A DNA stretch of 64,000 nt, taken from the NCBI RefSeq assembly GCF_030028105.1, contig NC_092372.1, positions 69,878,034 through 69,942,033 of the forward strand. Reading direction: 5' to 3'. Positions 36,635-38,467 of this stretch are shown here, in pieces. Below the pieces are notes generated by a model. It had not been told where the DNA came from and searched no databases. It worked only from the letters and a program-made list of their open reading frames with translations. The translations under genes and the position numbers were made by a program. How positions within the stretch are numbered: position 1 is the stretch's first letter; the number at the start of each line of letters is the position of its first letter. The stretch comes from Mobula birostris. Taxonomy: Eukaryota.

Positions 36635-36741
36635 CTGCCCTGATCCAACAGGCAACAACAGTCAAAAACAAGGATATTCGAAAGTTCTTGGATGGTATTT
36701 ACGTCTCTGAGAAGGGTGCAGTGGTTGAGACTTCAGCTTAG
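36635..36741 (+). CDS. RPL9: RPL9 exon 7a ([35 protein letters not shown]), giving a 192-aa protein
   Basis: tttttctag acceptor, phase 1; TAG at 36739-36741; followed by ATTAAA (36751-36756) and a donor AG|gttaga at 36757/36758. Confidence 0.93.
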
Positions 36742-36825
36742 ACATAATGGATTAAAGGTTAGAAAGTGTATTGTGTCTTCTCCATTGGAGCAGGCACGCA
36801 TAGGGTTTGTATGAAGCATCTACAG

Positions 36826-36902
36826 CAGGGCTTCCTGACCTTTATGCCACGGACCAATGCCGTTAAGGAAGTGTTCTGTGGACCCCAGGTTGGGAACCCC
36901 TG
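36826..36902. mobile_element. 77-bp hAT MITE
   Basis: TIRs cagggcttcctgacc / ggttgggaacccctg; 8-bp TSD atctacag (36818-36825 and 36903-36910). Confidence 0.85.
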
Positions 36903-37970
36903 ATCTACAGCCACTAAACTGCTATGTCCACATGTTGCTGAAATTTTGTTCTAGAAGTCATTGAGAAATAACAGATCTTTTGAAACTGTTTATATAAGAA
37001 AAGATGCAAGAGTGGATAGTAGCAAAAGTGCTTGATGATTTCTGGTCATCTTAAAGGGCTGTGTGCACACTATCATTAACTATTCAAGCAGCACGGGTAC
37101 TAATGTGACATTTTTAAGGATAATTGCTAAATTTTGAAAATTGTAGCTTATTAAAATGACTAAATTATGGGTACATTAAATTTATTAGTATTTCTGCTTT
37201 TATTTTGAATGTTCAAGGCTCTAGATAAATTCTATGGATTCTTGCTGCCCTTTATGCTGAGCCAACATGGAACATATTAGTATGGAGAATGTCCACAGGG
37301 AAAATTGATTCTTTAAAAATTCCATTTGTTTCTTATAAATATTTTACTGGGTAAATAAAAAAACAAGCAAGAGTAGGTCATTCAGCCTTTGACCCTGCTC
37401 TACCATCCAGTTTTTCCCCACTCCCATAGCCTTTGATATAGTTGGCTTTTGAAAATTATCCTAAGTACAGTAAGTGACATGACCTAAATACTTCTGTGCT
37501 TGTAAATTCCACAGACTCGAGACCCTCAGTGAAGCATCTTGACTTATTGCTCAATATTTAAGGTTCTCATTGCCAAAAGGCATGATGGCACAGAATTGTT
37601 GACAGTTTGACATCGTTGCAGCTTTGTGATAGCGATGTTATATCCTCAAAGTCATCTTTACAAATCATTTGCTTGCAGATATTAGTTGCAGCAAAAAGTG
37701 TTTTGATGAATTTTGTGAGCTTTCAGTTTGCCATAGTGCACTTTAAAGCCAGTGAAACAGGGAATAAATTGGTGGGAAATGATCAATTGGAAATATTGAA
37801 TGTTGAATTTAATCTCATCGAACCTTGTAAATGTGACAATATAGAATACAGCTGTTCATTACAATTAGATGCCTCAAGTTGGGTATGGTTAAAAATTAGT
37901 CAAACATTTGTTTTTAACATTAGTTAAAAATTTGTTTTGCTCTGGTGTAATTATTTGTTTTTATTCTTAG

Positions 37971-38080
37971 CTGCTCTCATTCAGCAAGCAACAACAGTGA
38001 AGAAGAAGGATATTCGTAAATTCTTGGATGGCATCTATGTGAGCGACAAGGGGACAGTTGTAGCACAGAGTGGAGAATGA
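37971..38080 (+). CDS. RPL9: RPL9 exon 7b, duplicated terminal coding exon ([36 protein letters not shown]), giving a 193-aa protein
   Basis: Strong acceptor tttttattcttag in the same phase 1; intact ORF to TGA at 38078-38080; poly(A) signal ATTAAA at 38130-38135 followed by a GT/T-rich element. Confidence 0.9.
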
Positions 38081-38129
38081 CACTTTATACTGGATAATCT
38101 ATAAAAACAATGGCTGTTAAAGCTGTTAA

Positions 38130-38135
38130 ATTAAA
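38130..38135 (+). terminator. RPL9: Probable RPL9 polyadenylation signal (ATTAAA)
   Basis: 50 nt after the exon 7b stop, with downstream ttgttgccgttttt. Confidence 0.6.
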
Positions 38136-38467
38136 TTCTAATGGCTGAGGATTGCCTTGTTGCCGTTTTTATTTGATGTTATTTTTGTGACAATGCACTT
38201 ATCCAGGGTTATGTTCTAGTCGGTATGATTTAAATAACTCTGGTACTAAAACCAGTTTAATCCCATTCTACCATCCTCCTGGCTTTAGTCTGGATTGGTG
38301 AGGAACCTTGACTGCTCAAACTACTTCCTCTGCCATTTTCCCTTTGCACACTCGATATTAATGCTCCCTTCCTGCTGCTCTTTCCAAGGAGGAATGACAT
38401 TGCAGATGATGCACAGGATTACATTACTAGCAGTATCTATTCCTAGGATCTTCAATTAATCTCATGA

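Follow-up and report, generated by a model that had tools for sequence, protein, structure and literature searches.

Two tandem copies of the last coding exon in RPL9 of Mobula birostris and their counterparts in other fishes

The ribosomal protein gene RPL9, which encodes uL6, was analysed in a stretch of 64,000 nucleotides from Mobula birostris (contig NC_092372.1, positions 69,878,034 to 69,942,033 of the forward strand). This whole stretch is referred to as the window, and coordinates are counted from its first letter. The window holds the orthologous RPL9 gene of an elasmobranch, and its uL6 tails look batoid-like. The gene has introns and is located on the + strand at 29.9-38.2 kb; six coding exons were read, the last of which has two candidates, exons 7a and 7b. 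The data support an old tandem exon duplication with both copies in use, and we have high confidence in the exon architecture described here and in the use of both copies.

Structure and splicing of the two last exons

Exon 2 (29913..29959) is the first coding exon, with the ATG at 29914-29916, and is followed on the + strand by exons 3 (30043..30158), 4 (33832..33927), 5 (34398..34530) and 6 (34625..34705). Comparison of the window by tblastn with two uL6 isoforms from Narcine bancroftii placed residues 1-193 on six exons, with coordinates that agree with those read: residues 1-19 were placed at 29914-29970 and residues 16-56 at exon 3, exon 4 was also matched, and exon 5 was matched at 97.8%. 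The exon peptides were searched singly against the Pfam domain Ribosomal_L6 (PF00347), which has a whole-protein cut-off of 27 bits. Only exon 4 clears it, with 28.1 bits, as expected when the peptides are fragments; the scores of exons 3 and 5 are 20.3 and 18.5 bits, and exons 6, 7a and 7b alone gave no Pfam match. The 7b peptide matches 56 distinct uL6 sequences of solved ribosomes in the Protein Data Bank (PDB), with a best E value of 3.6e-13. Window exons were compared one by one in this work, and full-length uL6 comparisons used database proteins.

Exon 6 ends in phase 1 with the donor CTG/gttagt. Exon 7a (36635..36757, + strand, 123 bases) is a cassette exon with a stop and forms the first copy of the last coding exon; exon 7b (37971..38149, + strand) is the second copy and the terminal exon. 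A sequence-only reading of this DNA had claimed clean acceptors and stops for both copies, and both were read: 7a has the acceptor ttttctag, preceded by a strong pyrimidine tract, and TAG at 36739-36741, and 7b has an equally good acceptor, ttcttag, and TGA at 38078-38080. The motif ATTAAA was read at 38130-38135 in 7b and also at 36751-36756 in 7a, where it adjoins the donor GT (36758-36759) with a GU-rich stretch downstream. The intron between the copies (36758..37970, + strand, GT..AG) is 1213 bases long. Exon 7a is the best match of Narcine isoform X2 (94.3% over 35 amino acids) and 7b of isoform X1 (94.4% over 36 amino acids), and in the tblastn comparison with these two isoforms the last exon appeared exactly twice in the window, with no third copy.

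Both copies are in phase 1, with 35 codons in 7a and 36 in 7b, and have 76% base identity over 93 bases, third positions holding 19 of the 22 base differences. The codon counts of the sequence-only reading were matched exactly on recount: the first 31 codons comprise 11 identical ones, 17 with synonymous differences (among them serine as TCT or AGC) and 3 replacements (N/K, E/D and A/T). Over the 35 alignable codons the corresponding counts are 11, 18 and 6, and past codon 31 the tails diverge to ETSA in 7a and AQSGE in 7b, each followed by the stop. Nei-Gojobori proportions of synonymous (pS) and nonsynonymous (pN) differences are 0.785 and 0.070, a synonymous-site excess with a Fisher p of 2.9e-10. 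The similarity comprises the exon and about 15 bases of the acceptor (36620-36695 against 37955-38031, 83%, E 3e-15). Flanks and introns are unrelated save for one weak match of 32 bases, which bears out the dissimilarity of the flanking introns noted earlier. Synonymous saturation and a similarity limited to the exon mean that the exon alone was duplicated, that the duplication is old and that the copies have not been homogenised recently in this lineage. Purifying selection on both copies, which had also been proposed, is indicated mainly by the contrast between pS and pN and by the presence of both tails in database proteins of distant fishes. An assembly duplicate or a pseudo-exon, rejected in the sequence-only reading as well, is ruled out by the saturated synonymous sites, the unrelated flanks and the splicing of both copies in relatives.

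Splicing was followed in Logan contigs, not raw reads, of four public runs (X1, X9, X10 and X15) placed on the window at 33800-38400. Contig depths are 10^3-10^5 in exon bins and 10-80 in introns, and the runs are therefore transcript-derived. Run X1 has no differences from the window introns over 1436 and 1121 bases and thus represents the window's species. Runs X9 and X10, with introns about 6% different, are from close relatives, and the kinship of X15 to the window's species cannot be judged from its contigs, none of which is an intron contig in the region. The joints 33927>34398 (GT..AG, runs X1 and X9) and 34530>34625 confirm exons 4-6. Exon 6 is joined to 7a (34705>36635) in all four runs, and the joints from exon 6 to 7b (34705>37971) and from 7a to 7b (36757>37971) are found in runs X1, X10 and X15. 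Run X9 has, for the former, a loose end with 19 letters of exon 6 at the 7b acceptor and, for the latter, a loose end of 14 letters. All three joints have GT..AG borders. Of the five introns between coding exons 2 and 7a, those after exons 4, 5 and 6 have GT..AG transcript joints, as has the sixth intron between 7a and 7b, and the gene is not a retrocopy. An unspliced contig of run X1 extends over 36878-37998 at depth 19, and an adapter-like loose end after 38149 in the same run suggests that exon 7b ends near this position.

All three junctions that the sequence-only reading had proposed to check were found at their predicted coordinates. Its proposal that exon 6 is spliced to 7a or to 7b stood in that exon 6 joins each copy, but the copies are not mutually exclusive in the mRNA, where the joint 36757>37971 puts both in one molecule. 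The exclusivity holds for translation alone, through the stop in 7a.

Some properties of these data weigh against the use of both copies as described. The joints of 7a and 7b have a shorter side of 22-30 letters (22-29 for the joints from exon 6), which is below the 31-letter criterion for bridging, and no contig has at least 31 letters on both sides; the contigs were probably broken at the branch of a 31-word graph. The run type, "RNA?", is a guess by the software. Contig depths are unfit to rank the isoforms and are inconsistent in run X1, with 19 for the joint of exon 6 to 7a and 15821 for that of 7a to 7b. The evidence for the isoforms lies at the level of transcript contigs and database proteins. 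In run X1 there are also contigs of low depth (48-49, against 10^5 for the main form) that cover exon 6 (34622-34705) and exon 7b (37998-38081) and differ at 3 of 84-85 bases; they might stem from a second allele, from a transcribed retrocopy or from another sample by carry-over.

In this arrangement 7a is a cassette exon carrying a stop and 7b the terminal exon with the poly(A) signal, present in every mRNA either as coding sequence or as 3' untranslated region (UTR). Both kinds of mRNA are made. In an mRNA with exons 6, 7a and 7b, translation stops in 7a and gives a uL6 of 192 amino acids with a KNK tail, leaving 7b as 3' UTR. Skipping of 7a joins exon 6 to 7b, where translation stops after a uL6 of 193 amino acids with a KKK tail. 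A stop codon nearer than 50-55 nucleotides to the last junction does not elicit nonsense-mediated decay. The stop codon of 7a is complete at 36741, 16 bases short of the exon end at 36757, so decay is not predicted by this rule and 7a-containing mRNA presumably escapes it. No poly(A)-bearing loose end after 7a was found among the loose ends listed, and contigs cannot display RNA ends. Directly past 7a, at 36790-36910, the RNA runs have many contigs, loose ends and a joint that goes back to 35007; this is probably another dispersed repeat, and it blurs any signal of read-through or polyadenylation after 7a.

The relatives of the window's species provide a further measure of selection on the two copies. 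Compared with the window, run X10 has 71 differences in 1176 bases of intron 6, 1 in 122 bases of 7a and 1 in 83 bases of 7b (both exons against intron, Fisher p 0.001). For run X9 the differences are 39 in 691 bases of intron 6, none in 71 bases of 7a and 2 in 60 bases of 7b (p 0.048). Exon divergence in the relatives is 0-3.3% against about 6% in the introns. Exon 7b taken singly in run X9 is not significantly different from the intron (p 0.76), so the relatives lend only modest support to better conservation of both copies than of the intron.

Distribution of the two tails and age of the duplication

Counterparts of the two tails were sought with phmmer, by which the 7b peptide gave 326 matches among 1.84 billion representatives, and in three region-restricted searches with database proteins, in which 1331 of 1340, 2587 of 2611 and 1527 of 1764 candidates passed and the best 120 of each were listed. 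Two cluster look-ups were also made; the 90% clusters contain both forms mixed. Among the matches listed, the b tail ([KR]KK..., usually in a protein of 193 amino acids) is found in proteins of at least 24 named fish species. Six of these are chondrichthyans (Callorhinchus milii, Rhincodon typus, Narcine bancroftii, Amblyraja radiata, Leucoraja erinacea and Rhinoraja longicauda), two are chondrosteans (Acipenser sinensis and Polyodon spathula) and 16 are teleosts. The Acipenser sinensis model has a KKK...SEKTTVLEMTSD tail, and the tail of the paddlefish is identical.

Both forms are recorded in at least four species among the matches listed, namely in Callorhinchus, Narcine, Salarias and Cyprinus. 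For Callorhinchus milii, GenBank contains several entries of each form that derive from cDNA, in addition to RefSeq isoforms X1 and X2. The Narcine bancroftii isoforms X1 (193 amino acids, b tail) and X2 (192 amino acids, a tail) come from one contig and are identical in their first 157 residues, as are isoforms X1 and X2 of Salarias fasciatus. The b form has 193 amino acids and the a form 192 in the window, Callorhinchus, Narcine and six teleost entries from five species, where only undistorted lengths are counted; three skates with a b form of 192 and Muraenolepis with 194 are exceptions.

In gene models from at least eight teleosts (Bagarius, Aldrovandia, Oryzias javanicus, Lates, Pangasianodon, Ameiurus, Cirrhinus and Acnodon), part of 7a is joined to 7b, and the predicted "uL6" proteins have 211-244 amino acids. 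The a piece always precedes the b piece, and bony fishes therefore share the tandem order. A whale shark RefSeq model named "WDR19-like" ends in an exon of the 7b type. The misled database models from the whale shark and eight teleosts are P0010, P0155, P0158, P0160, P0161, P0163, P0164, P0167 and P0201 in our numbering.

All named tetrapod entries among the matches listed are of the a type. Of the stored tails, 254 have the full core motif; 94 of these have the tetrapod-type ...QQ.. ending, 89 of them with N. The other five have K together with an extra R>E change, are derived from metagenomes without a species name, and look like pseudogene products. The lamprey has KNK with a T-type tail and the hagfish KKK, with one form each among the matches listed. 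No b form was found for the zebrafish among the matches listed, whereas other cypriniforms carry it. G is found in every gnathostome a tail, and T, the outgroup state, is kept in the b tails of shark and sturgeon and of many teleosts.

The two-tail arrangement is common to chimaera, sharks, rays, sturgeon, paddlefish and teleosts, and the duplication therefore most likely preceded the split between cartilaginous and bony fishes. A single duplication before that split is, judging from the sequences compared, a probable explanation. The saturated synonymous sites, the a-then-b order, the extra residue of the b form and the distinctions between N and K and between G and T all point towards a single origin. 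The b copy was most likely lost as coding sequence in tetrapods. In a maximum-likelihood tree of 39 exon-7 peptides with 35 columns, a single branch (93/72; 94% of bootstrap trees) has all 18 of the 18 b tails on the same side.

There are also observations that speak against one origin. When the two diagnostic columns (10-11) are removed from the alignment, the b label needs three changes on the tree, and the approximately unbiased (AU) test gives p 0.036 against a single b group, while a tree uniting all chondrichthyan tails is not rejected (p 0.21). In the N/K column, K recurs in hagfish and in invertebrate uL6, and K, R or D is found there in other eukaryotes, so this column can change repeatedly. 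These observations would fit repeated duplication, with independent events in cartilaginous and ray-finned fishes, or homogenisation of the copies within each lineage, in which case the a and b classes would not be orthologous. We regard this as unlikely. The a-then-b order is the same in the window and in the eight mis-joined teleost models, the b form exceeds the a form by one residue in the window, as it does in nearly all undistorted database b proteins, and G in every gnathostome a tail is set against T in shark, sturgeon and teleost b tails. Recent homogenisation is excluded in the window by the synonymous saturation between 7a and 7b, and the tree itself has only 33-35 columns. With so few columns, and with a grouping of the b tails that depends on the two diagnostic ones, the tree is no proof of a single origin. 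It was set aside as a means of dating, the b grouping being gone once these columns were dropped.

Surroundings of the gene

Downstream of RPL9, on the - strand, are exons of the Glyco_hydro_1 family. Three long open reading frame (ORF) pieces at 43817-53281 match this family with E values of 7e-74, 8e-83 and 1.4e-21. They look like a klotho-type gene, presumably the usual neighbour of RPL9, with an RVT_1 fragment at 49246-49740 in one intron. Intron 6 of RPL9 contains a palindromic element at 35047-35250 with arms of 91 bases that are 97% complementary and 22 bases apart. Contigs of all four runs pile up on it with many internal joints and a summed depth of up to 362,129 (run X1), and it looks like a very abundant transcribed repeat of this fish group, similar to miniature inverted-repeat transposable elements.

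Of two ORFs that are probably parts of transposable elements, the one at 20509-21036 has a GIY-YIG nuclease domain, its 22.9 bits being at the cut-off, and the one at 3893-4609 matches ALKBH8_N (29.1 bits). The region at 16-20 kb is GC-rich (0.54-0.60). An Rfam scan of the whole window gave 0 matches, so no small nucleolar RNA was found in the introns.

Significance of the two forms and comparison with known systems

The isoforms differ at residue 169 (N/K; Narcine numbering), by two conservative replacements and in the final 4-5 residues. According to passages on the structure in a paper on RPL9 and disease (PMC6954397), uL6 lies against helix 97 and expansion segment ES39, and one of its loops is at helix 95 of the sarcin-ricin loop, next to eEF2. 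The isoform differences are in the last domain and tail of uL6, near the sarcin-ricin loop and the elongation-factor site, and the two isoforms may differ in function. The five solved-structure alignments displayed have N at the position equivalent to 169 and are of the a type; the best chain is 7oya/7oyb with 192 amino acids, from structures that we take to be zebrafish ribosomes.

One far-reaching possibility, akin to the specialised-ribosome switch put forward in the sequence-only reading, is that 7a and 7b have formed a regulated switch between two ribosome populations since the ancestor that preceded the split of cartilaginous and bony fishes, with the ATTAAA at the 7a donor as a third level of control in which cleavage competes with splicing, and that tetrapods lost the b form and may keep its exon as a last exon that is non-coding. 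Taken as a whole this is doubtful. That the isoforms are functionally equivalent has about an even chance: both exons would then stay coding simply as a result of transcripts including or skipping 7a, an accident of splicing that became frozen, and there would be no specialised ribosomes. Within exon 7 the proteins differ at only 3 of the first 31 residues and in the last 4-5, no part of uL6 varies more between species than the tail, and both types of junction are abundant, which would be enough alone to explain purifying selection on both copies. Equivalence is less easily reconciled with the class-specific residues kept from chondrichthyans to ray-finned fishes, with N against K and with G in all a tails and T in many b tails. 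The crude share of 7a, estimated from junction-contig depths, also varies, from about 0.10 in run X1 and 0.23 in run X10 to 0.73 in run X15, in runs that come from different organisms and with depths that are unreliable.

The other explanations deny one of the two products. As a cassette with an in-frame stop that is followed by an intron, 7a resembles a poison exon, the inclusion of which would lead to nonsense-mediated decay in autoregulation of the ribosomal protein and leave the 6-7b product as the only real one. This is very improbable, as the stop is within the distance from the junction, 16 bases, that does not trigger decay; on this ground the poison exon was rejected. Its reading frame moreover gives a full-length, strongly conserved uL6 tail of the type seen in all the named tetrapod entries listed and the displayed structures, and 7a-containing contigs are abundant. 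Conversely, 7b is untranslated in mRNAs that contain 7a and might be merely a 3' UTR exon, or an artefact of assembly or of a pseudogene, with its reading frame a relic. There is hardly any probability of this. Exon 6 is joined directly to 7b in three of the four runs, with a loose end in the fourth; pN is 0.07 where pS is saturated, and in relatives 7b has 1 difference in 83 bases and 2 in 60 compared with about 6% in the introns. The b tail is also found in the fish proteins described above, the cDNA-derived Callorhinchus entries among them. Translation of both copies, one per mRNA, is the reading retained here.

Ribosome heterogeneity has been argued mostly from paralogous genes and stoichiometry, and RPL9 offers versions of a core protein that are encoded by splicing. 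As uL6 adjoins the GTPase-activating centre, removal of one exon copy in a fish model would be a clean genetic test of effects on translation, fidelity and development. The duplicated exon also explains errors of annotation, both the models that fuse 7a and 7b and the attachment of 7b to a neighbouring gene, as well as the one-residue difference in length among fish RPL9 entries. It is relevant to ribosome structures from fishes, the PDB alignments displayed being all of the a type.

Two uL6 products are thus already present in databases, through automatic annotation and cDNA entries, and the duplication is apparently undescribed in papers. No paper was found by full-text searches of the literature on a duplicated last exon or alternative C-termini of RPL9/uL6, although supplementary alignments may show the fish tails. 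In the available text of a catalogue of tilapia ribosomal proteins (PMC7072992), RPL9 has 8 exons and 192 amino acids, and the size of zebrafish RPL9 differs, with no explanation given. Eight exons for a product of 192 amino acids fit a 7a-7b splice, and the a and b isoforms would explain both the exon count in tilapia and the size in zebrafish. The eight exons would likewise agree with a non-coding last exon in human RPL9, as supposed in the sequence-only reading. The term "alternative splicing" is absent from that text, as is "isoform" from the available text of the RPL9 disease paper with zebrafish mutants (PMC6954397); the species tables in the supplement of the former and supplementary alignments of the latter may show the fish tails.

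The fish RPL9 records in RefSeq and GenBank contain the same products as those predicted here, as isoform X1 (193 amino acids) and isoform X2 (192 amino acids) in Callorhinchus milii, Narcine bancroftii and Salarias fasciatus. These records are, however, automatic and uncommented; some mis-join the exons (Bagarius and others) or attach 7b to a neighbour (the whale shark "WDR19-like" model), and other species have a single isoform.

Pairs of paralogous ribosomal protein genes are known from yeast (RPL9A and RPL9B) and from vertebrates (RPL22 and RPL22L1, RPL3 and RPL3L), and the yeast L9-A and L9-B chains are among the solved-structure matches of the 7b peptide. Such pairs likewise supply the cell with two slightly different versions of one ribosomal protein. 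In RPL9, on the other hand, splicing of a single gene creates the variation, which is limited to the last exon, with no separate promoters.

Tandem homologous exons in tropomyosins, PKM and ion channels are alternatively spliced and usually mutually exclusive. The RPL9 exons belong to the alternatively spliced homologous exons: the copies are adjacent, have the same phase and almost equal coding length, are old, are under purifying selection, and one of them is translated per mRNA. They differ from the known cases in that 7a is spliced to 7b and exclusivity is achieved by the stop in 7a, and in that the duplicated exon is the last coding exon and the protein a core ribosomal protein.

The closest functional parallel is RPS24 (eS24), of which C-terminal isoforms arise from small alternative 3' exons with cell-type specific use, according to the text available from two reports (10.1101/2025.03.28.645676; PMC8563012). 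In both genes 3'-terminal splicing alters the last residues only, through stop-bearing cassette exons just before the terminal exon. None of the RPS24 mini-exons duplicates a coding exon, and they contribute few residues, whereas in RPL9 a whole exon of 35-36 codons has been duplicated and both copies encode the same structural segment.

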